The notes under the pieces were generated by a model. It saw only the letters and a program-made list of their open reading frames with translations, was not told the DNA's origin and did no database searches. From assembly GCA_964035545.1 (NCBI GenBank), contig OZ037772.1, positions 7,486,889 through 7,550,888 on the forward strand: a stretch of 64,000 nt of DNA, given 5' to 3'. The DNA comes from Bugula neritina (Eukaryota > Animalia > Bryozoa). This document shows, piece by piece, positions 15,572 to 64,000 of this stretch. Position 1 is the first letter of the stretch. Each line of letters begins with the position of its first letter. The translations under genes were made by a program, and so were the position numbers.

Positions 15572-15765
<194 letters not shown>

Positions 15766-17129
15766 TTATAGATATTTATTACTTGGTAACATGTATTTTA
15801 AATAACTATACCTAAACGAATTAATTCACTACTCGGTTATAGTGTTAGGATGAGGATATTAAATGTAAAGAAATAGCTGTTTTACAATACTTCTATCTAG
15901 TATCTATCTAGCCAGAGAATACACCATGTAAAACTCAGCCAATCGGGGGTGTGTACCAACTCTAAAATCTCACCAGAATAACTTTTTTAAACTCCTACAA
16001 GTTAAAGCACCGAAATGCATGCTTTCAAAAACTAACTGTGAAAGTATTATTGCCTTTCGTTATTTCATTTTTTTTCATTTTATTTTATTTCATGTCTCAA
16101 GCTTTCGTGTCTTGAGTTCATTTTTCATAGTGTTTAAATCAAGTGTTGATAATGCAATCAAAAATTACATGTCTACAAAAGTGCCCTGGTACAGTTTTAC
16201 CACAGCTTCAGCGTGCTAGTATTTTAGAGCAGTAGAAAGAGCATAGCGCAGCTATTGAGCTGTAATGACAGTGGCACACTGTATTCAGTAGTAGTATGTT
16301 AGTCATATACATTACATGATAGCATTAGCCTTGTGGTCCTTTGTATGTAGAGCTACCACACTTACGACACAGTCACCCTTCTTCTTTCTACCAAGCATAA
16401 TAGTTGCAGTGATAAAAGCTTTTTCATGATTTAGTTTTAAATCAGCAGGTACTGCTGAGTACATTTTCCTAGTCTGAATATTTTATGTGCTTGCTTTAAT
16501 AAGATAACTTAAAAAATTGTTTTACACACAACTGCAAATGCATTAACCTATATTGCTTAGCATAAAGTAGTTGATTTATGTACCAACCATTATTTTATCC
16601 TAATTTTTTACTATAGCAGTGTTTTAAAACTTTGGTATATTTGTTTGTAGTGCACGGTGTGTGAATCCATATCTTTAGTTGGTATCATCAAAATAGTACC
16701 ATGTGTAGTGGAAATATATTTATTACATTAGAGTAATCTTTTTATGTATTGTATTTTATTTTTATTTTGAAATTTAATGTAATGTGATTATGTTTTTCGA
16801 TCCTGTCCGATTGTCGGTACAAGTGCTGATTGTCGGGCTCTGACATCGGACCACGGTACTGATGCCGGAGTCCGATTGTCGGAAGTTGCTGATTGTCGGG
16901 CTCCGACAATCAGACAGGATGAGAACAAAAAACTTTTCTTGTATAAAATGAGGTAAGCTCGCAGTGTAGAGTCAGTCTACTACTAGAGCTCGCTGGATCA
17001 AGACTACTTTTACCAGGTATAAATAATACAATAAAGGTTCATCTACTCAAGCTTGTTACCACTTCTTGTTCTTTATACTGGAGCTATGTTTCCCACTTAG
17101 ACTGCATTCTACCCACAAAACTACTAAAT

Positions 17130-17144
17130 TGGTGGCAGCGGTGG
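17130..17144 (+). promoter_or_regulatory. Primer-binding site complementary to the tRNA-Leu 3' end
   Basis: TGGTGGCAGCGGTGG just after the 5' LTR is the complement of ...CCACCGCTGCCA-CCA. Confidence 0.8.
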
Positions 17145-17189
17145 AATCCAGAATAGTTAAGTGGCCTACTGAAAGGATAGAAGATCAAG

Positions 17190-20100
17190 ATGGCCAAAGG
17201 GGAGAGAGAGGACCAGTCGCTGAAGTGCCAACAAGACCAGCCCTTACATTGGAGGCTCTGGTGGCGGCCCTCCGAGAGGTCCAAGGGGCTGGACAGGCGC
17301 TACCTGTTGAAAGTGCCGCCTCAAGCCCCCGACCTTCTGATCAGACAGCGATATGGAGCAATTTATCTGGAAGTTTAAGTATGTGGCCACCATTGCTGAA
17401 TGGCCAGCACTAGTGCGCGTCCTGTAACTTTGAGCCCGATGAAGCCCACATAATACGAGCTCTCCGAAACTCGTTTTGGTTTGACAACCCAAGAAGCCAG
17501 GGACAAGCTGCAAGGGCTAAGAAAAAATTGGAGGATGTTCTTACAAGACCATGGCAACTGGATTAAGAGGCTGGCCTAAACTGCTTTCAGTCAGGCCAAC
17601 GAAGACAAGAAGAGACGCCTGATATATAATGCGTCTTTTAGAACTATTAAAAACTCAGGACTACAACGCTACTGATTGGCGGCCTAGTTAAGTACTATTA
17701 AGGAGGCCCTGAAGAAGAGCAAGGCCCATTATCAGGTTGATGGACCCCATGGGCCTGACTTTGCCGCCCACCAGGTAGCCAAAGAAAAAAAGGAGACCAT
17801 CCCACTCCCTACTCTGATCATAGCGGCAGCTACCACAAAGTCGCCAGAGCATACACAGCTCACCATGTTGATGGACATGGTGAAGGACCTGCAGGCTACG
17901 GTGACAGAGCTGCAACGCAACCAAGCCAACAGGCGGGCTCCACAATTGCGGGATGATCCTGTCCGCCCTCCACACCTAACCTGCTAAACATGTGGTGCGT
18001 ACGGACATGTGAAAAGGCAATGCCCTAGGGGAAGATGAGTGCCTTTAAACAGCTGAGGCTCACGGTAACTTCCACCCTGAGCGCCTGAGCCCCAAGCCAG
18101 TCCCATTTGGGGAAGGCTTAGAGGACACGCAGGAGGACCTCTAAAGAGCCTGCTGATGCTGAGTGGCAGGCACATCAAAGACCTCTGACACCGCAAGGTC
18201 TGCCCGATCATCCGGCCTGGCCGCTCTGTAACCGATTCGCAGGGTTGCCCGAAGAGGTTGTGAAAGAAGATTCAGCTTACTCGCAAGAGTATCTCAAGCT
18301 ATTTTCTCAACTTCAGAAAACCCCTGGTGTCTGCAAAACAAAGAGGAGGCCTGTTGTGCAGACCCAAGTAGTGTCTCCCCCAGAGACTAACTGCTCCAGG
18401 AGCACCCAGCCGTACGGAAGCAGCTATTTCCTGCACAGAAAAATTTTGATTAGAGCTGCCACATTCTGACTGAACACTGGGTGCACCACCAACCCGCTGA
18501 GTCAGCGTCTTTTCGACACTCTTGGTTACCGTTAGCGTGCGAGCCTCGCGCCGTTTGAAGGTGCACATAGTACGTTGGTGGACAAATCATGTATTTTTTT
18601 GCTACGGCATCGTCACACTACTTGGATGTGTCCGTGATCAGGTGATTCACAAAATGCTCATAGTCAACCAGCTAAAGGAGGTCGTCATCTTAGGGGTGTA
18701 ATTTCTGAAGAAACACCAGTGTCACATGAATTACCAGAAGTCGACGGTGGTGATGGCTGGGAACGAACTTGTCTGTGTTGACAAGTTTGGCAGGCCCTTG
18801 GTGGACAAAGTCCAGGCAGTGCGGGACTGCACGGTTCCTGGGAGATTCCATACAACTCTCCGCTGCAGGGTCAACTGCAAGGAGATTGCAGGTCTAAAGT
18901 GGTGGAAGGAGCGCACAAAGTAATTCGACTGGCAAACAGCCTAAATCGGCTAGACTGTCAGAGAGAGCTTCTCGTGCAGGGTATCAACCCCTTCACCGAA
19001 CCAGTCTGATTATTAGCTGGGGCGCTGGTGGAGAAGTACCACTCCATCTAGGAAGCGGATGTGGGGCAGGCGCTAGAAACAGTAGCCAACATCCAGTGAA
19101 ACTCTCCTTGTACCAGTCGAGAAGCAGTCCCGGAGCACTTGGCTGACCTCTATGGTAGAACTTTTGACAACTGTACAAATAGTACTGAACGCCAAGTACT
19201 GGCTCAACTACTCATAGAGTACAGTGATGTCTTCAGTTGCGGAGATGGAGACATGGAGCTGATTAAGGTTATCTCCCATGAGATACCCTTGGCAGCCAGC
19301 ACAGCCCCTATCAGGTAGCCAACCCGATGTTTAGGCCCGGAGAAGGAGGTGAGCCGACAAGTACAGAATCTTCTCGTCTGGGACCTGATTGAGCCTGCCT
19401 ACGGTGCGTGGAGCTCTCCAGTAGTCCAAGTCGAGAAAAAGGATAGTAGCTGGAGGTTCTGTGTGGACTACCGCCAACTCAACAGTGTTACCATCCAGGA
19501 TGCCCGCCCTTTCCCACAGACAGATTAGTCGCCGGATGCCCTTGCGAGCAGTAAGTACTTTTGTACATTGGATCTGCTTAGCAGGTATTGGCAAGTGCCC
19601 CTTAGTCCTGATGCCCAAGACAGAGCAGAATTCATCACCGGTGATGGGCTCTGAAAATGGAAAGTGCTGTCATTCAGTCTTACATCCGCCCCGGCAACTT
19701 TCCAGCAACTCATGAAACATGTCCTCAATGGATTACACTTGAAGACCCTGGCAATCTAACTGGATGATGTCATTGGTATCTCCCTGACTTTACGATTCAT
19801 GTCAGTCGTCTGCGAGAGGTCTTTGAGCGCCCCCGGGCAGCTGAACTGAAGTTTAAGCTTTCCAAGTGTGCACTCCTGCAGCTGGAAGTCATTGACCTGG
19901 GCCATGAAGTTGCTCGTGATAGAGTTGCTACCAACACGGAGAAGGTGCAAGCTGTGAATGAGTGGACTGTTCCCCAAGACCTTCCTGAGTTGCGGGCATT
20001 GGTGAGCCTGGTAAAGCACTATCGGCAGTACATGCCTGGGTTTGCAAGGGTGGCTCAGCCTTTGAATCAGCTAACTGCCAAGGGAGTCCGGTGGCAATGG

Positions 20101-20300
20101 ATACAGGAGGAGTAGCAGACATTTGAGTTTTTCAAGCAACAGCTAATGGAGGCGTCAATCCTGTCGTATCCTGATCCATCCAGAGAGTGCATCCTGGACA
20201 TCGACGCCAGCAACCATAGCGTGAGAGCTGTTTTGTCCCAATTCCAGGGTGGAAGTGAGGTGGTTGTAGCTTACTACAGCAAGAACCTCGCGACCGCCGG
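17190..20300 (+). pseudogene. Disrupted Gypsy gag-pol
   Basis: CCHC knuckle C*TCGAYGHVKRQC (~17980-18025), protease-like LNTGCTT (~18470), RT motifs WRFCVDYRQLN and I*LDDVI (19754-19774), RNase H start ILDIDASNHSVRAVLSQ...YYSK. Confidence 0.88.
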
Positions 20301-20732
20301 TCAGTCAGTCAGGTATTTGTTTAGGGCTAGATCCTCTAGTATCGGAGTCTAGCCCAACTTTTACTAGTTGGCCTGCACTAGACTCACCCGAAACTGCCCT
20401 GTTTGAGACTATCAATATGGATTTCGGAGAAGATTCACTCCACGATTACCTGTTAGATCAGGACGTGAGGTCAGTTTTTCTCTAGAATTATTGCAATTCC
20501 CAGTCTCTAGCAGGGTACCCAACAAACAGGTACCGAATTTCGGCAACAGTGAGACAGGCCAGTCACGGCCTCTACTGTTGTAGGGACTGATGTGGAGAGG
20601 AAGGATGCTGGGACGAGTTGTATCAACTCCTTTCCTGTCCAGGCCCTTTGTTCGGCTCTTAGCAGTCTGAAGGGTGCCACTCAAATATCTGAGGTGCTAC
20701 CCACCACCGCTAGTATACCTGTCTCCTAGCCC

Positions 20733-21500
20733 ATGGAGCTCCATCTATCCGCGGGGGACCAGCAGGTGATCCTGCACCTTGAGCGTTTTGAAGAATACTC
20801 ATCAGGTGTGTTGGCTCTACCTCAGGCCCTGTTCGCCCGCCAACACTGGACCACCAAAGAAACTAATCTCCAGATACGCGGAGCTTGCAGCGAGATGGGC
20901 AACCGTGCATGTCATCAGTGCCGGAAGAAGTTCTCTTCCACACGTCAGCTGCGTGTACACACCCCGCAGCACTTGGTAAGCGTATTCTGTTCATGTGACA
21001 AATGCTCTTATTAGCGCGACTGTGTGCTGTGCCATCAGCACATAGCTCGCTGCCACATAGGTCATACGTTCGTGGTCGATGAGACCATGTTTCCGAAGTT
21101 CAGGGACTTGATTCTGCCACACCTCAAGGACCCCCATAAATGACAGCTTTTGCTTTTGGTTTCCTGGCGCATTGGCCCTTGAGAGAGGAGGACCTTGAAC
21201 CGGCCGCTGCATCCCAACCACCAGCTACCCAGCCTTTTTGGGTCCTGCTGGCACGGGTCGCCAAAGTCCACTGCTATAGGCCTGGACCCTCGACCCGCAG
21301 CGGCGAATAAGAAGAAGAGGGACCAGCATACTCGTGTAGCCTGAATCTCTCAGTCTACCCAGGACCACCGACCGATCTGCCCACTGGAAGATGAGGTTCG
21401 GCACCTGTGCCACCATATGCGGCGATATGAAGAAGAGATGCGGCCTTCTGAAAGCAGCTTAGCCGTCTAGAGCACCCTGATGGAGGCCGCCGACACTTAT
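20733..21500 (+). pseudogene. Decayed accessory ORF of the Gypsy element encoding a C2H2 zinc finger
   Basis: CHQCRKKFSSTRQLRVHTPQH is a C-x2-C-x12-H-x3-H finger. A second finger-like segment continues through a stop (FCSCDKCSY*RDCVLCHQHIARCH). Confidence 0.65.
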
Positions 21501-22840: not shown

Positions 22841-23904
22841 TAAGTCAATCTCAATATATAAGTTACAAAACCTCCAAATGTCTGTTGCTTATTGAATTAA
22901 TTAGGCAGATGTCGGCAAATCTTAGAGAGCACTTTATGTTATTAAACATCTGTTTTCTATTAATAACATTTAGTATTCAAGATCTTGGTGCATGTTACAA
23001 ATTCCTTTCTAGTATATAGACAAGTTCATTAAAAAATAATTCTTGTAATATTGTTATAATTTCCACGAATTATAATGTTTAGTGTGGGTTCAAGCTGCAA
23101 CTGTTTTACTCAACTTATATGCCCAAACACTGAACAGGTAGTAGTAGATGAAGTTTATATTTAACACAATATATACAGACGATATCAAAATACACTTACA
23201 TTATGACACATAAAATATATCTAAAAACTACTCTCTTGTTTCACATGCTACTCAGAACTGATCCAACTCTAATAATATAATTGTCAGAAAGCATTGTGCT
23301 TCGCCGTGGGGGGGTAATCACATGCCTAACAATGATTGGCTTAATTACACGTGATGTTACCACATTTCACTGGCTACTACAATATAAAAAAGACAAAACT
23401 TTTTGCATGACTCCGTTTCTTCATGATTTAATATTGTAGTATTTTCTTTTTCTATATTGAAGAAATTCCTTGCACAATGCACTAAAATTTTGTTGATCAG
23501 GTTAGCCTTCTAATAACACTGAAATATTTAACTAACGAATTCGTTAATGTCAGTCATTTTGTTCCTATACACACAAATATTAGCCACAGAACACAGATCC
23601 AAAGTGTTCCCATGAACTATGAAATTTGGTGAAAAAAATCTGTGAGATATGGTAGAAGCGCTGTACATAAGTCTCAACACCTGGCGTATTTTAGGTGGTG
23701 TATATTTCATAGAGGTCAAACAGAATGAGTGTTATTTAGTTGATCAGGAAATCACTATTTAATTTTAAAAATCTGGAATAAATGTTTTAATAACATGAAA
23801 AAGTTTTCATTTCAGAGGTAAATACTTTTAAGGAATTTGAGAATGATATGTTATGTTACAATAGCTTACCATTTTTCAATTAAAAGGTAGTGATAAAAGC
23901 TCTC

Positions 23905-26900
23905 ATGAAGAAAATCAAAATGGATTACAATGCAAAAACTCTACACAAGGCTGAAAGCAGAGAAGAAGCTAAACTGCTGCTTGAATCAGTGCCACCAGAA
24001 AAAAGGAGAGACTTATTACTATCTGTCGATGACAAGCAATGTACAGCTCTACATGTCCAAACCAGTAATGGTAAAGCAGATGTAGTTGAATATTTATGTC
24101 ATTCATTCAATACCAATAATGAACTCTTGCTAGCAAAAGATTTAAATGGAAAAATAGCTCTACATTATGCAAAAACCAAAAAAATAGCTGAACTACTTGT
24201 AAAAGCAGTCCCTCTGAAAAAACATAGGGATTTTATATTATCTGCTGATACAAATCAGTGTACAGCATTACATGTAGCTGCCGTCAATGGCGAAAGAGAC
24301 GTTGTGGACTATCTCTGTAGTTTACCAATAACAGAGGAACTAGTGTTTGCAAAATGTAACAAAGGCAAGACAGCCCTTCATTATTCTTCTAACCACAAAA
24401 TTGCACAAACACTTGTAGAGTCAATCACACCTGACAAAAAAAGGGATTTTATATTATCAGTTACTAATAATCAGAGCACAGCATTACATTATGCTGCCAT
24501 TGAGGGTAAAACAGATGTAGTAGAATATCTCTGTAGTTTACCGGAGAAAGATGAGCTAGTGTTAGCAAGAAATGACAAAGGCTGGACGGCCCTTCATTAT
24601 TCTCCAAACCACAAAATTGCTCAAACACTTGTAGAGTCAATCACACTCGACAAAAGAAAGGATTTTATATTATCAGTTGCTGATCATCAGCTTACAGCAT
24701 TACATGTAGCTGCTAGCAATGGTAGAACAGATGTAGTAGAGTATCTCTGCGGTTTACCAGAAAAAGATGAGCTAGTGTTAGCAAAAAGCATTGAAGGCTG
24801 GACAGCCCTTCATTATTCTTCAAACCACAAAATTGCTCAAACACTTGTAGAGTCAATCACACTCGACAAAAGAAGGGATTTTATATTAACAGTTTCTGTT
24901 AATCAGCTTACAGCATTACATGTAGCTGCTAGCAGTGGTAGAACAGATGTTGTAGAATATCTCTGCGGTTTACCAGAAAATGATGAGCTGGTGTTAGCAA
25001 GAGATGACAAAGGCAAGACAGCCCTTCATTATTCTTTCAACCACAAAATTGCTCAAACACTTATAGAGTCAGTCACCCCTGAGAAAAAAAAGGATTTTAT
25101 ATTATCAGTTTCTGTTAATCAGCTTACAGCATTACATGTAGCTGCCAACAACCGTAAAATAGACGTTGTGGAATATCTGTGTAGTTTACCAATAACAGAG
25201 GAACTGGTTTTTGCAAGAACTAACGAAGGCTGGACAGCCCTTCATTATTCTTCCAACCACGAAATTGCTCAAACACTTATAGAGTCAATCACACTTGACA
25301 AAAGAAGGGATTTTACATTATCAGTTACTGATGATCAGTTCACAGCATTACATGTAGCTGCTGGCAATGGTAGAACAGATGTAGTAGAATATCTCTGCGG
25401 TTTACCAGAAAATGATGAGCTGGTGTTAGCAAGAGATGACATAGGCTGGACAGCCCTTCATTGTTCTTCAAACCACAAAATTGCTCAAACACTTGTACAG
25501 TCAGTCGCAGCTGACAAAAGAAGGGATTTTATATTATCAGTTACTGATGATCAGCTCACAGCATTACATGTAGCTGCTGGCAATGGTAGAACAGATGTAG
25601 TAGAATATCTTTGTAGTTTACCAGAAAAAGATGAGCTAGTGTTAGCAAAAAACATTGAAGGCTGCACAGCCCTTCATTATTCTTCAAACCACAAAATTGC
25701 TCAAACACTTGTAGAGTCAGCCACAGCTGACAAAAAAAAGGATTTTATATTAACAGTTACTGAGAATCAGTGCACAGCATTACATTATGCTGCTGACAAA
25801 AGCAAAACAGATGTAGTAGAATATCTCTGTAGTTTACCAGAGAAAGATGAGCTGGTGTTAGCAAAGAGTAACAAAGGCAGGACAGCCCTTCATTATTCTT
25901 CAAATCAGAAAATTGCTCAAACACTTGTAGAGTCAATCACACTCGACAAAAGAAAGGATCTTATATTATCAGTTAGTGATTATCAGCTCACAGCATTACA
26001 TGTAGCTGCCATCGATGGTAAAATAGACGTTGTGGAATATCTCTGTAGTTTACCAGAAAAAGATGAGCTAGTGTTAGCAAAAAATAGCAAAGGCTGCACT
26101 GCCCTTCATTGTTCGTCAAATAAGAAGATTGCTCACAAACTTGTAGAGTCAGTCACACTTGATGACAAAAGAAGGGATTTTATATTATCAGTTACTGAGA
26201 ATCAGTTCACAGCATTACATGTAGCTGCTGACAAAGGCAAAACAGATGTAGTAGAATATCTCTGTAGTTTACCAGAGAAAGATGAGCTGGTGTTAGCAAG
26301 AGATGACATAGGCAGGACAGCCCTTCATCTTTCTTCAAACCACAAAACTGCTCAAACACTTATTGAGTCAATCACATTTGACAAAAGAAGGGATTTTATA
26401 TTATCAGTTACTGATGATCAGTGTACAGCATTACATATAGCTGCTAGCAATGGTAGAACAGATGTTGTGGATTATCTCTGTAGTTTACCAGAAAAAGATG
26501 AGCTGATGTTAGCAAGAAATGACAAAGGCAGGACAGCCCTTCATTATTCTTCAAATCAGAAAATAGCCCAATTGCTTGTAGAGTCCTTAAAAACAGAAAA
26601 ACAGAGATACTTTGTATACATGGTAAACAATTATAAATCTACTGCTTTGCATGTAGCTGCTGAGGAGGGTAAAGTTGATGTAGTAGAATATCTCTGTAGT
26701 CTATATCCAAACAACAATGAACTGATACTAAAAAAAGATGCTGATGGTAATACTGCATTGCATGTTTCTAAAAATCGAGAAATCGCTAGAATACTTTTAG
26801 AATCTGTCACAAAAGTTCAGCAAGCTCGCTTTCTTTTGACTAGTAATAGATATCAGCAGACAGCATTACATGAAGCCGCACGCTCACGTAGAAATGACGT

Positions 26901-29900
26901 AGTAGAATATCTTTGTGAGTTATGCCCAACTGATGAGTTATTTCTCAATAAAGACAGCTCTGGCAAAACTGCTTTATGCTACATTGAAGACAGGAATACA
27001 GCTGAACTGCTAATTAGATCAGCAACAGAAGATGGAAGGGCTAAACTGCTATCAGCTGTTGACAGAAATGAACAAACATTGTTGCACCAGGCTGCTAAAT
27101 TCGGTAGAACTAATGTAATTGAGTATATTTATAGCTTATTAGGTAATGTGGAGCTGTTCTTGAAGAAAGACATTTTTGGCAGAACAGCACTACACTATTC
27201 TAAAAATAAACATGTAGCCAAAGCTCTGTTAGAAAAAGTCCCTTCAAAACATCAAAAAGAGTTTATTTTATCAGTTGACAATAGTGGGCGGACAGCACTG
27301 CATGCAGCAGCAGTCACTGATAAAGCTTTTGAAGTACTCGAATACTTTTGCGAATTACACATAGCAGACGACAAAATGCTAATACAAAAAGACAGAAATG
27401 GCGAAACTGTTTTACACTACGCGGCCAACAAACAAATTGCCAAGTTGCTCATAGATTCAGTTTCACCAGAGAGAAAAGCGGAATTTCTATTCTCTATGAA
27501 TGCTGATCAAGGCACAGTGTTGCATAAGGCTGCTTCATCTTTCCGAACTGATGTTGTCATGTTCCTTTGCAGTTTACCATTACTTGACAATGAATTTATA
27601 TTTCTGGCAAACAAATTTGGTCATACCGCTTTGCATTATACTAAAAATAAAGAATCAGCGAAAGCGATTGTGGATTCGGTTACACCACCAGCAAGACAGA
27701 GAGACCTACTTCTTTTACAAGATAAAAACAAATCTACAGTATTGCATCACGCAGCTACAGACTGGTATGAACAAGATCTAGTGGAATATTTTTGCAGCAT
27801 ATCATTGGCAAAAGACGAGCTGATATGTGCTCAAAATTCTAATGGCCAAACGGCATTGCATTTTGTGTATGACTCACAGATGGTCAAATCTATTGTTTTT
27901 CATCTACACCCTGAAAAGTTACCGTTACTGCTAATGAGTGAAGATAACACAGGAAACACACCTATTCTCTCATTAGCATTCTCAGGAAATGTTAATGCTT
28001 TGAAAGTTCTTCTTAAGCATATTGATGATCAGTGTGAGCCAGAAATAATGTCACTATGCTTACAAAAACACAACAAACTGAAACAGAACATTTTACACCT
28101 TGCAGCTTTGTCACCATATCTTGACCAGCTCTATGATGTTTTGATAGAATATTTATACTGTGTAGATATAAGCAGCATGATGTATCCTGATGTTTATGGT
28201 AATACCCCATTGCACTATATTGCTGCCAAGTATAGCACCAAAATATTTGCTGACTTTATGTTGCACCTTCCTTTGACATTGAGAAAGAATGTCCTGACTT
28301 GTCCAAACAAGCAGAAAACTACATGTCACTCAATCATTGCTAGATCTCGTTTTGATACTAGATACTATGTTGATAAGGTTCTAGGAGGTGATGCAGCAAG
28401 TTTAGCAGAAACAGGCAATGCTACATCTTTATTCGGCATATTTGCAGCTATATCAAAACGCCTCGTTTGCCCTGTCCCATACGCATATAATGAGGATATT
28501 TTCAAAGTATTGCAGCATACTCTAAATCAATACCTACTGCCATGCATCTCTGTAAATGATGAAACAGCTAAACTGTTACCTGCAGCTGCTACTGCAAGAA
28601 TTAAACCAGAAAGATGCCTTCAAAAACAAGGAAAAGTAAGTTATCTGAAACATTTTCAACAATTTTCTCACCAATTATTTTTTGACCGTCACTGATTAAA
28701 CTTATAGTTTGCATAGTTACCATACAGTTTTAAAAACAACTTCAACAGCTGCTGTTGATATCAAACGACAATCGTGTAGATAGTTATGTGAAACTATGTT
28801 ATACAAACTCCAGCTTATATTTTTAGCATCTGTTCAACCTACAACATATGTTTTTTTCAGTAAACATTTTTCAAAAGCTTCTTGAAAAACTAAACTCGCA
28901 CTAAATATTGTCCAATTGTGTTTACATCTCTTTATTTAAGTGCTGAGAGTATATAATTTCTTCAAATAGACTTTTCTAATCAAGGATTTTTGCTATAGTT
29001 GGTAAAATACAATTTTGAACAGTTGTGCTAATTAAAATTGTTTGAAAATTACTTTTCAACCTGATTTTGTGATATGTTAAGTTATCAAAAACAATTGTGA
29101 TATAGAAAAACTGTAGGATGTCAAAAACTAGCCAGTTTTAATTATATTGCTGAAAAGTTTTAAACTTCTTACATTAGACTTTGAAATTGTGTTCTATATT
29201 TATCATCACCATCATGAAACATTCATTAAAACTATAAATTATACTGGACTCTGATAGAAATCAAGTGATGCACAAGACTACTCGTTGATAGTGGTAAGCT
29301 CAACTGATGTGGAAGGGCCAAAACAAGATGTGGTACAGCATAGACTCAGTGACATGGATTACTCTGAATACCATGGCAAACCTAAGGTATCATGTCTATT
29401 TGTCCAACCAAAGGATATATAAATGTATCTTTCAATTTCAATGTATTTGTATTGGTTATCTTACCCAGTATGCAGTTAACACTATAACTTACAAGTTTGC
29501 TTTGATGCAAATTGGAATTACATGGTAAATTTTGTAATGTAAAGAGCTAAAGATTGGGTGATTTTTGTTTTTTATACATAGATAGCAGTTATACAAAGTT
29601 CTGCAATGGAACCAAATCTGAACTTGATACCACCAGGTCCTGATTATCTGATACTCTCAGTGAAATATAACACAGCTGAATACACAAGGTAATGCTATAA
29701 ACTATTAATTAACCCATAAAGTGATTGACTGGATGTGTTTTAACTTTAGTTTACATGTTTTTTTATACAACAAACTTTCAAGAACTTTTTTGCTCAGGAA
29801 TCCGGTACAAGATGTCGAAAAACACAACTCTATTCAATCATTTATTTCTGAGCTCAGCTGTTGTCCTGATGTACAGAAAGTGAATGTAAACTCAACTCTG

Positions 29901-31731
29901 AACAAGATATACATCAGAGGAAAAAATAAGTGTCTTGCAGATGGTTGTAAAGTGGGTTATAAACCAATTGATGATCCAATGCAAGCTGAATCTAATGAGA
30001 AAAAGTCCAAAGCATTGATAATTTGCAATCAATTTAAAATCAGAGATGGAATGACTCCAGAAAACCTACAAACAACAAAGTCTCGCAAGACTACCTTAAA
30101 AATGGCCCAGACAGTATTTGAAGATTATTGGGACTTTGAGGTAATGACCTTCTAATGACATATGTTATTTATCATAATCAAAGCATGCATAATTGAAAAT
30201 ATGTTAATCTAAATTGTACTTATTAGTAATAATCCAAATACGAATGCTGATCAAAATTTCAACTTTCCATAATTCTCAGATAATGCTATAACTATGGAGC
30301 TCAAACAAGTTAACACATAACTATCTTTGTACATAAAGGCTAATTGTGGTATATGAGTGCAAGTTACAATTATTAAATCAGTTACCAGATAATGTTGTTA
30401 GTGAACCATATTATTCTTTAAACTTCTTTAAATTAGGTAGAAGTCAAGTATGATCTCTCTGCAGAAGAAATACTCAGTTCTATATCTGAGTTCTCCAGAT
30501 CAGAAGGACATGGTTCAATGGCTGCTTTGACTATCCTCTCCCATGGATATCAAAGAAACATAATGGGAGCTGATAACCAATCAGTGTGTTCTGTACAGGA
30601 AGTAGTCGACTCATTCAACACAGGAAATGTTGAGAATATAAAAAAGGTTTGAGAAAACTCATTTTAATTACACAGCAGTTGCGTATATTGGCGTCAAATA
30701 TTGATTATATTTCCATCATGCCGTCAAAAATAAATTTCTCAATGAAATAATATTTTTCTGATACACTTTCACTCTTTATATTGTAGTTACTATTTCTGTC
30801 TTACTGCCGAGGAGGTATTCCCACTCAGTTTAATCGTGCTCAACACAGCTTTGAGTCTGGTTCTGGTTTTCCATGGCCAGAGCGAGGGCCTTCAGAGCCA
30901 AATTATCAACCACTCAAAAAGTTTCTAGATGAGTCGTTTAGAAAGCAGGAATGGTACAGTCTACCAACTTTCCCACCATTGGAAGTTCCTGTAGACTGTT
31001 ACATTATGTTCTCCACTCTACCAGACAGCAAGTATGTAGCATCAGAACTGATTTTCAGTATTGAATTGATCTAAATTTGCGTCAAAAGAAATTCAAATTG
31101 CTTCGGCCCTGCACATAATATGCTATAGCAAATTTTCAGCAAAGTGCCTTACTTTACTTTTCGTAACCCATAAACAGCTCACAAGACTGTTTATAGATGT
31201 CTTCAAACAAAATCACAGCTATAGATTCAATTGTTTTGATTAGAAAAGGTACTCTTTTCTTCCCATAAAAAACCCAGTATTTGAAAATAAATAAACTTTT
31301 ACAATAGTTTTTCATGTGAATCAAAATATATTGTTGTGGGCATAGTAATTAATAATTAGTTAAACTGGGTACCCGATGTTTCATAGTCCCACTGCCTGTA
31401 ACATATTCCATCGTGATTTTACAGGTCAAAGCCAGGACTGATGTTCAAGTGTTTGTCAGAACATCTGAGAGATCTGACCAGTGATTACAGAAGTAAACTA
31501 TTGACACCTGCTACCAGCTCTTCTGATGACATCACAGAACAAGCAGACAGAAAACCGTCAAAAGAAAAGCCAGTAATGAGAGTAAACCTACTTGATTTAC
31601 TCACAGATGTAGCTGGAATAATGAGAGATACGTCCAGATCTACACAATATGCTAACTTATGTTATACTGTTGATAGAAACAGTCAACAGATCTTTATTGA
31701 CATCTTTAAGCCCAGCTCTGAGTCAAAATAA
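23905..31731 (+). CDS. Ankyrin-repeat / pseudo-caspase / caspase (peptidase C14-like) protein, paralogue 1, ~2020 aa. Exons 23905 (or 23920)-28635, 29258-29386, 29582-29688, 29798-30140, 30437-30646, 30787-31031, 31425-31731
   Basis: GT-AG splicing in phases 0,0,2,0,0,2 gives an uninterrupted frame. 18 double-ANK units, then caspase motifs KALIICNQF, LTILSHG (His 30542-30544), LFLSYCRG (Cys 30805-30807), DCYIMFSTLP and LLDLLTDV. Confidence 0.88.
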
Positions 31732-40412: not shown

Positions 40413-42302
<1,890 letters not shown>

Positions 42303-45300
42303 TCACAGTCGCTTGTACAATCCGTTGCATCTGAAAAACAGAAAATATTTCTGTTGTCAGTTAGTATGCTAAAGTCTACATCGTTACACATGGCAGCTTG
42401 CAAGGGTAGAACAGATGTAGTAGAATATCTCTGTAGTTTACCAGTGAAAGAGGAGTTGGTATTAGCAAAAAGTGACACAGGCCGCACAGCCCTTCATTAT
42501 TCTCCAAATCAGAAAATTGCTCAACTACTACTAGAGTCAATTTCACTTGACAAAAGAAGAGATTTTATATTATCAGTTGCTGATAGTCAACTCACAGCAT
42601 TACATGTAGCTGCTAGCAACGGTAGAACAGAAGTGGTGGAATATTTTTGTAGTTTACCAGCAGAAGATGAACTCCTGTTAGCAATAGATCAGGATGGCTG
42701 CACAGCCCTTCATTATTCCTCAAATCAGAAAATAGCCCAACTGCTTGTAGAGTCGCTGAAATCGGAAAAACAGAGATACTTTGTATATATGGTAAACAAT
42801 AATAAATCTACTGCTCTGCATGTAGCTGCTACCGAGGGTAAGGCTGATGTAGTAGAGTATCTCTGTAGTTTATATCCAAACAATGATGAGTGGATACTAA
42901 AGAAAGATAATAATGGTAATACTGCATTGCATGTTTCTGCAAATAGAGAAATTGTAAAAACACTTTTGGGATCTGTCAAAAAAGAGCTGAAATCAAGTCT
43001 GTTTTTGGCTAGAAACAACTTCCAACAAACAGCACTGCACACCGCTTCAATTTCCAACAAAACTGATGTACTAGAATGTCTTTGTAAATTTGAAAATATT
43101 GGTGAGTTACTTCTCATAAAAGATTGGACTAGCAGAACTGCCTTATACTACATTTACAGCAGATATGCAGCTGAAATTTTGGTTAATTCAGCAACAGAAG
43201 ACGTAAGGTCTAAGTTATTATCAGCTGTTGACAGAGATGGACAAACAGTATTGCACAGAGCTGCTAAATTCAGTCGAACTGATGTAATAGAATATTTCTG
43301 CAGTTTATTTAGTGACGATGAGGTGATGCTCAAAAAAGACATGTTTGGTAAAACAGCTTTACACTATGCAAAGAATAAGCAAGTTGCTAAAAATCTTCTC
43401 ACATGTGTCACTTCAATAAACCAGAAAGACTTTATATTGTCTTCTGACAAATTAGGATCAACAGCATTGCATACAGCTGTAGCCACTAGTCAAACCTCTG
43501 ATCTGGTGAAATACTTTTGTCAATTAAGCTTGGCTGATGATCAATTGTTTCTGCATAAAGACATACACGGAAAATCAGTTTTGCATTGTGCTATTAATAG
43601 CAACGTTGCAAAAATGCTCATAGAGTCAGTTGCACCGAAGAAGCAAAAGAGCTTCCTTTTTTCTCTTGATATAAATCAGCGCACAGCATTGCACTATGCT
43701 GCTATATGGTTTCGAACAGATGTTGTCAAGTTCTTCTGCAGTTTACCCTTGGTTGATGATGAATTTATATTTTTTAAAGACAAAATTGGGCAAACAGCTT
43801 TACATTATGCTCAAAACAAAGAGTCAGCAGAAGCTATTGTAGAATCAGTTACATCATCAAGACAGAGATATCTTCTCTTTTCACAAAATGGAAACAAATG
43901 GACAGCATTGCATTCTGCAGCCTTAAATCCATTTGGAGCAGATGTAACAGAGTATCTTTGCAAAATATCAGTAGGAAATTATGAGCTGATATCCGCTCAA
44001 AATTCGTATGGTCAAACAGCATTGCATATTGCTTGGAGCGCAAATGCAGTGAGATCCATTCTCTTTTCTCTACAAACTGAACAGTTACCTTTTCTGCTCA
44101 TGAGTGAGGATAATGCAGGAAACACACCTCTTCTTTCATTAACACTTTTAGGAAATTATAATCCCTTAGAACAAATCCTGGAGCATATTGAAGATCAGTG
44201 TGGATCAGAAGTAATGCCATCATGCTTACAGAAACAAAACAAACTCAAACAAAACATTTTACATCTTGCAGCTTTGTCGCCACGCCTTGACAAAATATAT
44301 GATGTTTTGATGAAATATTTACACAATGAGGATATAGTGAGCATGATGTATCCTGATGTACGTGGTAACACACCAATTCATTATGTTGCTGCCAAATACA
44401 ACATCAGAGTGTTTGCTGACTTTATGCTACACCTTACTTTGCCAATGAGACATTTTGTGGTAAATCATTCAAATAAGCTGCAAACAACATGCTTGTCAAT
44501 AATTGCTAGATCATCTTTTGATACAAAATATTATGTTGACAACATTCTTGGGCCACCTACAAGCAAAACAGCATTATCAGCTCCTGAGATAGCACCATTG
44601 GTTTTTGCTTCATCAATTTCTAGCATTTTGTACAGAATGTTTCCATATTCATACAATCAAAATGTGTTCAAAGTATTAAGCCATGCTCTTAATCAATACC
44701 CAATATCAGACAGTTGTTTGATTACATCGCTTGATCTGAACAATGAAACAGGAAAAAGTTTGCTGGAAAAAGAAAAAGTATGTGATTTCCTTTGGTTTTT
44801 CTTTCAGTTTCATTTAATACCACCATGACTAAATTGTTTTGTGAAAACAACTCTCACGTTTTGTTTTATTCCTATCTTCAAACTAAACTGGAATGCTTGA
44901 AATTTTACGTGATGTATTCAAAATTTTAAAGTTGAAAGTTGAGCAAAACACTATTACTTTACATTGCCTTTTTTATTTATAAATGTTAGAGATCTAAAAT
45001 AATTATACTGTATTTGTATTAGGAATCGAATAAAGGTCAGGACTACTTGTTAATGATCGTTAACACAGTTGATGCTGAAGGGCCAATACAAGATACTGTG
45101 CAGAACAAACTCAATGGTATGGACACCCTTGAGTATCATGGCAAACCAAAGGTATAACCACTTTGTTATATGTGACTGCAAAAAGATAATACATTTTTGT
45201 TGTTTAATTTGATAGTATAAAACTGAAATGTACAACTGACTGATCGAATTTATGTTAAGTTGTCATTGTGATCAAATTAAAAGTTGCAAAACTCCTTTTT

Positions 45301-57207: not shown

Positions 57208-64000
<6,793 letters not shown>

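Follow-up and report, generated by a model that had tools for sequence, protein, structure and literature searches.

The question raised by this locus is whether the residues that differ among the tandem ankyrin units of a single bryozoan gene have been diversified by selection on a recognition surface, or vary only because the units are young and loosely constrained. The gene, here called gene A, lies in a window of 64,000 nucleotides from Bugula neritina (contig OZ037772.1 of assembly GCA_964035545.1, positions 7,486,889 to 7,550,888 of the forward strand). Its parts, in window positions, are as follows.

23920-28635, plus strand: intronless ankyrin exon of gene A, 4.7 kb, its start set at the methionine that aligns with the starts of genes B, C and D
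24259-26637, plus strand: array of 11 young double-ankyrin units, A02-A12, of 216 bp each, A10 having 219 bp
26638-27954, plus strand: older, diverged double-ankyrin units from A13 onwards, with a spacing of 36-38 residues
27955-28635, plus strand: C-terminal portion of the ankyrin exon, common to the whole gene family
29264-29398, 29582-29683 and 29805-29954, plus strand: three short exons leading from the ankyrin exon to the caspase domain, located by tblastn
30437-30649, 30805-31041 and 31423-31704, plus strand: caspase exons, located by Pfam, translations and tblastn

The ankyrin exon belongs to an open frame of 1601 codons (23890-28692) that runs uninterrupted through DNA of 35% GC; another in-frame methionine is present at 23905, upstream of the chosen start. 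Against Pfam, the exon matches Ank_2 (E 1.2e-152, 21 stretches) and Ank (E 7.7e-123). A splice donor, GTAAGT, stands at 28636, the equivalent site being GTATGT in gene B and GTAAGT in gene C. The product of 27955-28635 shares 44% identity with P0011, a Bugula neritina protein, over residues 11-206 of the latter, and the three short exons match residues 244-373 of the same protein at 40-74% identity in tblastn. The caspase exon at 30437-30649 carries the histidine motif SHG and scores 31.0 bits against Peptidase_C14 (cut-off 21.4), while the exon at 30805-31041 encodes the cysteine motif SYCRG in translation, both catalytic motifs of Peptidase_C14 being present in gene A. In this gene a very long ankyrin-repeat array and a caspase are predicted to form one polypeptide.

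The window contains three ankyrin-caspase genes, and a fourth (gene D, with 23 units) is found 16 kb outside it. Genome-wide the family numbers about 20, as counted from roughly 20 genomic matches to the C-terminal portion of the gene A ankyrin exon (27955-28635), which served as family tag. The other two genes in the window carry units of the same 216-bp family.

42159-42806, plus strand: three 216-bp-family units of gene B, in the exon 41826-44777
57541-59916, plus strand: eleven 216-bp-family units of gene C, in the exon 57208-61449 (Tandem Repeats Finder, 10.9 copies, 82% matches)

SHG and SYCRG caspase exons are found downstream of A, B, C, D and most family members; the exons of A, B and C within reach of the window are collinear with the P0011 gene model, and D has matches to the caspase exons downstream. 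The ankyrin array that precedes the caspase reaches up to about 2,100 residues in the family. A distant paralogue, E (L028), has an array of 3025 residues with no young units and so gives no test as an independent replicate. The three ankyrin exons yield only ankyrin families above the curated Pfam cut-offs, neither NACHT nor NB-ARC being among them. The P0011 gene model yields only Peptidase_C14 plus a sub-threshold Ank_3; the central NTPase that defines NOD-like receptors (STAND) is found neither in the ankyrin exons nor in P0011. No description of this family or architecture was found in the literature searched, which is not proof of absence.

Among metagenome contigs, an orthologue of gene B (L025, from a sibling taxon) was recovered at 90.9% nucleotide identity, collinear across the entire 3-kb exon and with identical repeat spacing. 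A scan of these contigs with the C-terminal region found no orthologue of gene A. A candidate orthologue of gene C (P0002/L027) was only about 80% identical, with a flank matching DNA upstream of gene A, and was left out of the dN/dS comparisons because its orthology is unclear.

The periodicity of the gene A array is far beyond chance: Tandem Repeats Finder reports, at 24214-26585, a period of 216 bp with 11.0 copies, 84% matches, 0% indels and a score of 3066. Units were cut from the 1601-codon frame at TxLH motifs, which gives a strict spacing of 36+36 residues in the young units. Ten units have 72 residues and A10 has 73 because of an extra D codon, the only indel in the array being this one whole codon. 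The count of 11 units with one of 73 residues had been made in a preliminary description of the sequence and is borne out, the true span (24259-26637) being the one given there (24262-26640) shifted by one codon. The residue pairs it listed after LHxAA (VN, IE, SN, SS, NN, GN, GN, DK, ID, DK and SN) are all exact, and all the hairpin tips it quoted are present, as is the Y/C/L residue that follows the second TALH. Its phrase "highly similar" suits the in-frame repeats less well, as units of gene A share on average only 72% of amino acids (range 54-86%) and 83% of nucleotides; the best pairs reach 86% amino acid identity in gene A, 93% in gene C and 100% in gene D. Likewise, variation is present at the sites it named, but these sites, which make up 17% of positions, account for only 43% of the amino acid differences; unit positions 55-61 (the loop after helix 2 of repeat 2), 11 and 24 are variable too. 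A second variable patch, and with it positions 55-61, is putatively located off the canonical binding face. Units group mostly by gene, and an array-terminal type is common to several genes; identical or near-identical units occur in D, and nearest neighbours in A are offset by blocks.

The AlphaFold2 model of units A03-A06 (pLDDT 95.8, pTM 0.90) is a continuous ankyrin solenoid, and a Foldseek search with it retrieves EHMT1, ankyrin-1, Espin and an extended DARPin at TM 0.70-0.74. Each 36-residue half aligns one to one with repeats of AnkR and AnkB, TALH falling on TPLH, and the array combines the Pfam motif repeats and the modelled continuous solenoid by which the ankyrin repeat superfamily is recognized. 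The second repeat, earlier called shortened, has a reduced inner helix in the model (4 residues versus 7); both halves nevertheless span 36 residues, a longer loop with an extra helix making up the length.

DARPin design randomises positions 2, 3, 5, 13, 14 and 33 of the ankyrin repeat, and the same positions of repeat 1 (ANK 5, 13, 14, 33, 2 and 3) formed the class defined a priori, with the binding face and concave side assigned by sequence register, not coordinates. Codon models were our own implementation, not PAML or HyPhy, with FEL-type site rates on a grid and partition likelihood-ratio tests (LRTs) in which the clock was fixed from the 60 non-class codons. Omega for the class is 2.30 in A, 1.84 in C and 1.79 in D, with p between 2e-4 and 3e-3. 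The remainder of the unit has an omega of 0.33-0.48, and in each gene 10-14 codons show negative selection, which marks the scaffold as subject to purifying selection. Tree-free comparison of sister pairs gives a class pN/pS of 1.26-1.79 (p 0.015-0.08). The class excess is due to positions 13 and 5, to which position 5 of repeat 2 adds only in gene A.

24283-24285, plus strand: ANK position 13 (unit position 8), the residue that closes the repeat-1 inner helix, in its first copy; further copies recur every 216 bp, plus 3 bp past A10
24259-24261, plus strand: ANK position 5 of repeat 1 (unit position 0), which directly precedes TALH, in its first copy; it recurs with the unit period
24367-24369, plus strand: ANK position 5 of repeat 2 (unit position 36), in its first copy, with a signal in gene A only

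Position 13 is the best-supported positively selected codon, a result that is robust: its omega lies between 4 and 10 in each of A, C and D and with all units taken together, and with a site-specific dS its LRT values are 5.7, 8.9 and 6.6 (A, C and D) and 19.7 (all units). At position 5 of repeat 1, omega with a shared dS is 3.6-11.3 in A, C and D (LRT 7.0-40.8), but the synonymous rate is raised there too, 4- to 6-fold, which weakens the support for selection; exchange breakpoints where one unit meets the next might explain this synonymous rise. Unit position 36 holds K, W, C or R in gene A, and W in 10 of 11 C units and 18 of 23 D units; in gene A its omega is 10.8-14 and its LRT (21.8-25.2) is higher than at any of 720 neutral simulated sites. 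For the hot codons, CpG hypermutability was rejected on the basis of the codon lists and the neighbouring codons.

That constraint has only been relaxed, with exposed positions of a young amplification drifting and omega lifted above 1 by gene conversion, tree error and the choice of the most variable sites, is possible but rather unlikely. Four of the six a-priori positions have an omega of about 1 (0.75-1.33, not distinguishable from neutral), and most exposed hairpin and turn positions do drift about neutrally. Between gene B and its orthologue, pN/pS over the whole class is 0.96, which indicates relaxed constraint with no excess of change. In simulations with recombination, 7-12% of neutral sites pass the nominal 5% threshold, and synonymous-rate outliers on the same trees (LRT up to 12.9) show that single-tree site tests are inflated. 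Recently duplicated repeats in general are also reported to evolve under relaxed or positive selection (PMC5120217). Against relaxation stand the class values of A and D, which were reached by none of 60 simulations each with a neutral class and inter-unit recombination, and position 13, which is significant in three genes independently even when allowed its own synonymous rate. At this position the third base remains C in 35 of 48 units while the first and second vary, which argues against a mutational hotspot or neutral drift. The diversifying selection on a recognition surface put forward in the preliminary description is partly supported: it is seen at class level in A, C and D, but narrowed to two or three residues, the other positions named as hypervariable evolving about neutrally; the per-codon dN/dS check suggested there places positions 13 and 5 above 1, with the four neutral-like class positions and the B orthologue pair close to 1.

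The reading that we consider probable, if only moderately so, is that of a young in-frame array in which two or three groove-flanking residues per unit are under diversifying selection and serve recognition at a caspase. It is proposed that 216-bp double-ankyrin units were amplified recently, in frame, inside the giant first exon of a bugulid bryozoan ankyrin-caspase gene. To judge from the pattern, unequal exchange may have enlarged the array, together with duplication of blocks one to several units long; these processes would yield 3, 11, 11 and 23 young units in the neighbouring paralogues B, A, C and D, most units being closest to others of their own gene. Within the limits of the method, purifying selection keeps the helix-packing scaffold, and the residues flanking the inner helix (ANK position 13, position 5 and, in gene A, position 5 of repeat 2) change faster than synonymous sites. 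These residues may line the groove by which ankyrin solenoids hold their partners. In that case the array would work as a recognition surface undergoing diversification; it might bring a ligand or substrate to the C-terminal caspase or be activated by a ligand, and it would occupy the place of the CARD or DED prodomain of other caspases.

The closest precedent is the internally conserved ankyrin repeats of fungal NLRs, a class with more than 85% amino acid identity between repeats over at least 100 residues (Dyrka et al. 2014, PMC4986451). In the fungal case (e.g., Podospora anserina Pa_3_8560), five codons per repeat are positively selected, on concave-face inner helices and the hairpin (PMC4986451). 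Both groups share tandem, mutually similar repeats, variable repeat number and signs of concerted evolution, the variation in number and the exchange being judged here between paralogues. In both, positive selection falls on a small number of codons of the concave face, which in the bryozoan genes (face assigned by register) are position 13 in A, C and D and, more weakly, position 5. Unlike the fungal repeats of 33-34 residues, the bryozoan unit is a 72-residue double repeat (36+36); its array is N-terminal and accompanied by neither NACHT nor NB-ARC, the predicted effector is a caspase encoded by the same gene, and the organism is an animal. The mean identity in gene A (72%) lies below 85%, a level reached only by parts of C and D. 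A further parallel is offered by the WD40 NLRs HET-E and HET-D of Podospora (PMC4986451, PMC12222747), in which repeats are reshuffled within and between members, a few residues of the interaction surface are under diversifying selection, and a role linked to cell death and non-self recognition has been shown genetically. In contrast to the bryozoan genes, whose function would be of this kind only by inference, HET-E and HET-D have a WD40 beta-propeller, a STAND NTPase and a HET effector.

Similarity to DARPins lies in the fixed consensus scaffold, the variation at the six randomised positions and the fold match (6mol, TM 0.70). DARPins, however, are synthetic, with 33-residue repeats and capping repeats, whereas the bryozoan repeats have 36 residues and an extra short helix, and only positions 13 and 5 exceed neutral expectation. 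The term library, used in the preliminary description, is a metaphor only, since the variants compared are paralogous units of single genes and of one protein, not alternative molecules. The predicted proteins resemble CARD and DED caspases in their C-terminal Peptidase_C14 domain, His and Cys dyad and preceding interaction module, although the module is an ankyrin array rather than a death-fold domain.

In ankyrins, partners bind the inner groove. The membrane-binding domain of ankyrin-R/B and NOMPC likewise form long continuous solenoids; their repeats, by contrast, are old, diverged and fixed in number (24 and 29), with no caspase and no recent amplification. A structural role of this kind, in which the solenoid is an arm, ruler or elastic caspase tether whose copy number matters and which reads no ligand, is improbable. 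It would fit the finding that NOMPC, followed by AnkR/AnkB, is the best sequence match among solved structures, the range of 3 to 23 units between paralogues, and the long array of the distant paralogue. A pure spacer does not predict variation concentrated at positions flanking the inner helix, nor the excess of pN on the face over the scaffold that is seen even between gene B and its orthologue (odds ratio 2.8, p 1.7e-6).

Fungal non-self receptors typically carry near-identical repeats in which a few residues on the surface change rapidly, and the array of gene A presents the same evolutionary mode in an animal, with no NOD domain, in a lineage-specific family and with a predicted direct coupling to a caspase. 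Bryozoans are named among the colonial animals that show allo-incompatibility (PMC8195603). If the array is a recognition surface, the family would be a concrete candidate for linking recognition to cell death in bryozoans. The broader suggestion, that the approximately 20 genes encode sensor-proteases of a single chain, restricted to bryozoans and NLR-like but lacking a NOD, in which the array diversifies at groove residues and a ligand bound to it switches on the caspase in allorecognition between colonies or in the control of microbes or symbionts, is speculative and, as a whole, doubtful. In addition, the natural 36+36 double repeat, as modelled, may offer a stable alternative ankyrin scaffold with known tolerant positions.

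A mis-assembled array or a decaying pseudogene is hardly credible, for although short-read contigs from the public runs (87% of words in one run, the others being short Logan contigs) collapse and mis-join within the array, the frame is intact, indels are confined to one whole codon, the scaffold is conserved, the architecture recurs in four paralogues as well as in the B orthologue, which comes independently from a metagenome, and contigs of run X1 are identical to the left edge of the array (24200-24465) and to the region downstream. The heterozygous differences in run X1 are located downstream of the array.

The array of gene A, one of three predicted ankyrin-caspase paralogues (A, B and C) in the window, is an ankyrin (ANK) solenoid of recent, in-frame 216-bp units with a caspase encoded downstream. 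Its scaffold is under purifying selection, most of its exposed positions drift in a neutral-like manner, and amino-acid change is in excess at ANK position 13, a like excess at positions 5 being less certain. The window's DNA is AT-rich and eukaryotic; it contains microsatellites, and long open frames are scarce. It occupies C8:7486889-7550888 of a 216-Mb assembly that was searched for family members. Public runs having a small share of the window's sampled words are labelled as symbiont metagenomes. The frames of A, B and C are all made of ankyrin repeats (Pfam), and a fourth frame, gene D, lies outside the window:

23890-28692: gene A, very long intronless frame, 1601 codons
30437-30649: caspase exon with SHG, Pfam-significant at 31.0 bits
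41826-44825: gene B, very long intronless frame, 1000 codons
57208-61455: gene C, very long intronless frame, 1416 codons
L024:509-7864: gene D, fourth frame, 2452 aa, 16 kb past the window

A conserved donor closes each ankyrin exon (GTAAGT at 28636 in A, GTATGT at 44778 in B and GTAAGT at 61450 in C), so that in each frame the final ~20 codons belong to an intron. The exons downstream match, in order, P0011, a Bugula neritina caspase-p20 protein that is the sole named relative of the window's proteins and whose best copy in this genome is 91% identical; the exon following the SHG exon carries SYCRG. Together with the symbiont-metagenome labels, this kinship points to a bugulid bryozoan that is near to, though distinct from, the sequenced B. 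neritina. This ankyrin-to-caspase order is repeated at most of the ~20 family members. In one distant member (L028; G000:C6:3072300-3082299, minus strand; 3025 codons), ~2,700 residues of double-ankyrin repeats, old and diverged, precede the shared C-terminal tag; this array, which contains no young repeats, is to our knowledge one of the longest ANK arrays in a single exon. Pfam detected no NACHT or NB-ARC domain in the ankyrin exons of A, B and C or in the related P0011. Upstream of gene A, a GC-rich island (17000-21500; 49-51% GC against ~34% around it) has no Rfam match, and its open frames are short on both strands; it may be the remnant of a mobile element.

The 11-unit array of the preliminary description was recovered at 24259-26637, where units A02-A12 fill the interval with one additional codon in A10, and its residue lists agree exactly with the unit table. 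TRF reports a 216-bp period at 24214-26585 (11.0 copies, 84% matches, no indels), and the same unit recurs in ~3 copies in B, 10.9 in C and 22.6 in D. A TxLH motif occurs every 36 residues across the entire array of each gene, which makes the repeat a 36+36 double unit. Central units are young and C-terminal units diverged. Mean identity among the A units is 72% at the amino-acid and 83% at the nucleotide level, and the closest of them differ by a synonymous distance of 0.155, against 0.144 for the orthologue pair of gene B described below; the A array is thus not of very recent origin. Among the 23 young units of D, D12 and D14 are identical and D08/D10, D16-D19 and D20-D22 form near-identical blocks, indicating very recent unit duplication. 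Paralogues differ in copy number, with blocks duplicated both between and within them, and the array would grow by unequal exchange. Unit C02 (57541-57756), the first young unit of C, has a second half of the YF[IV]YMV type, which in A, B and D belongs to the last young unit; this is apparently the mark of an insertion or duplication by which the C array was rebuilt.

The AlphaFold2 model of units A03-A06 (pLDDT 95.8, pTM 0.90) builds each half-unit from inner and outer helices plus a third, short one located in the lengthened loop; in the second half-unit the inner helix spans just four residues. Foldseek groups the model with continuous ANK solenoids (EHMT1, ankyrin-1, Espin and an extended DARPin; TM 0.70-0.74). 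In phmmer alignments, each 36-aa half matches one 33-aa AnkR/AnkB repeat with TALH over TPLH, which fixes the ANK register of the unit positions (numbered from 0):

Unit position 0: ANK position 5
Unit positions 8 and 9: ANK positions 13 and 14
Unit positions 31, 33 and 34: ANK positions 33, 2 and 3
Unit position 36: position 5 of the second repeat

These are the positions that DARPin designs randomise. They were set as test classes before any rate was inspected: a first-repeat class (ANK positions 5, 13, 14, 33, 2 and 3) and a second-repeat class of their equivalents, with the binding face assigned by sequence register rather than by model coordinates.

The codon alignment comprised 48 young units, to which A and C contributed 11 each, B three and D 23. 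By Nei-Gojobori counting, dN/dS in gene A is 0.57 over all codons and 0.43 over those outside the classes, and dN in the first-repeat class is 1.76 times the pooled dS. Independent sister pairs, which require no tree, give this class a pN/pS of 1.26-1.79 (p 0.015-0.08) and the rest 0.40-0.50. In our own GY94 likelihood implementation on IQ-TREE trees, with kappa and the synonymous clock taken from 60 non-class codons, first-repeat omega is 2.30 in A, 1.84 in C, 1.79 in D and 2.09 across all units, the rest lying at 0.33-0.48. Without unit positions 0 and 8 it falls to 0.75-1.33, not different from 1. Second-repeat omega is 0.6-1.0 except in gene A, where position 36 raises it to 1.64. Under a site-specific synonymous rate, position 8 is positive (LRT 5.7 in A, 8.9 in C, 6.6 in D and 19.7 in all units), as is position 36 in A (LRT 4.3); position 0, with a synonymous rate raised 4- to 6-fold, keeps little of its support. 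The codon at position 8 ends in C in 35 of the 48 units and varies in its first two bases, a pattern that favours selection on the amino acid over a mutational hotspot.

On these trees some synonymous-rate outliers have an LRT as high as 12.9, so single-tree site tests are somewhat inflated, probably through exchange between units. For each of the A and D trees, 60 simulated data sets held all 12 class sites neutral and the rest constrained; conversion was mimicked by relabelling 40% of tips in two of three segments, after which trees were re-inferred and tests rerun. Across the simulations, class omega peaked at 2.13 in A (median 1.10) and at 1.41 in D (median 0.98). The largest simulated class LRTs, 10.6 (A) and 5.0 (D), compare with observed values of 14.0 and 11.1, which none of the 60 data sets reached for either gene. 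LRT 15 (A) or 18 (D) was surpassed by 0.3-0.4% of neutral sites; observed site values are 15.6-19.4 (A) and 18.3 (D) at position 8, 21.8-25.2 at position 36 in A and 40.8 at position 0 in D.

In gene A the variable sites of the preliminary description make up 17% of positions and carry 43% of amino-acid differences; unit positions 55-61, 11 and 24 also vary. The proposal of diversifying selection on a recognition surface was right in kind and overstated in extent: it applies to two or three codons in each unit and not to every variable one, and the term "library" is so far unsupported. The groove may act as such a surface, and recognition could be coupled to caspase action. Fungal NLR proteins have internally conserved ANK repeats that are polymorphic in number, evolve in concert and carry a small number of positively selected sites on the concave face, and just 0.8% of metazoan repeats are highly internally conserved (PMC4986451). 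Unlike the fungal repeats, the bryozoan array has an animal host, a 72-aa double unit and a probable caspase partner, in a gene without a NOD domain. The literature searched contained no description of an ankyrin-caspase family.

Between orthologues, the face of the small paralogue B evolves neutrally, not above neutral. Its orthologue on metagenome contig L025 is collinear, with 90.9% nucleotide identity across the whole 3-kb exon and equal repeat spacing; over all 20 repeats, pN/pS is 0.96 at the six DARPin positions against 0.38 at the remaining ANK codons (odds ratio 2.8, p 1.7e-6). A second metagenome contig, L027, carries a gene nearest paralogue C (~80% nucleotide identity), and its upstream flank (L027:3282-3992) is an 86% match to 15756-16457 of the window, which lies upstream of gene A. 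Either the sibling taxon has the cluster in another arrangement or this flank belongs to a dispersed repeat. In the public sequencing run X1, 28118-28757 is also represented by a second sequence form, at roughly half the depth and differing every 30-50 bp, which points to high heterozygosity in the individual or to a closely related paralogue.
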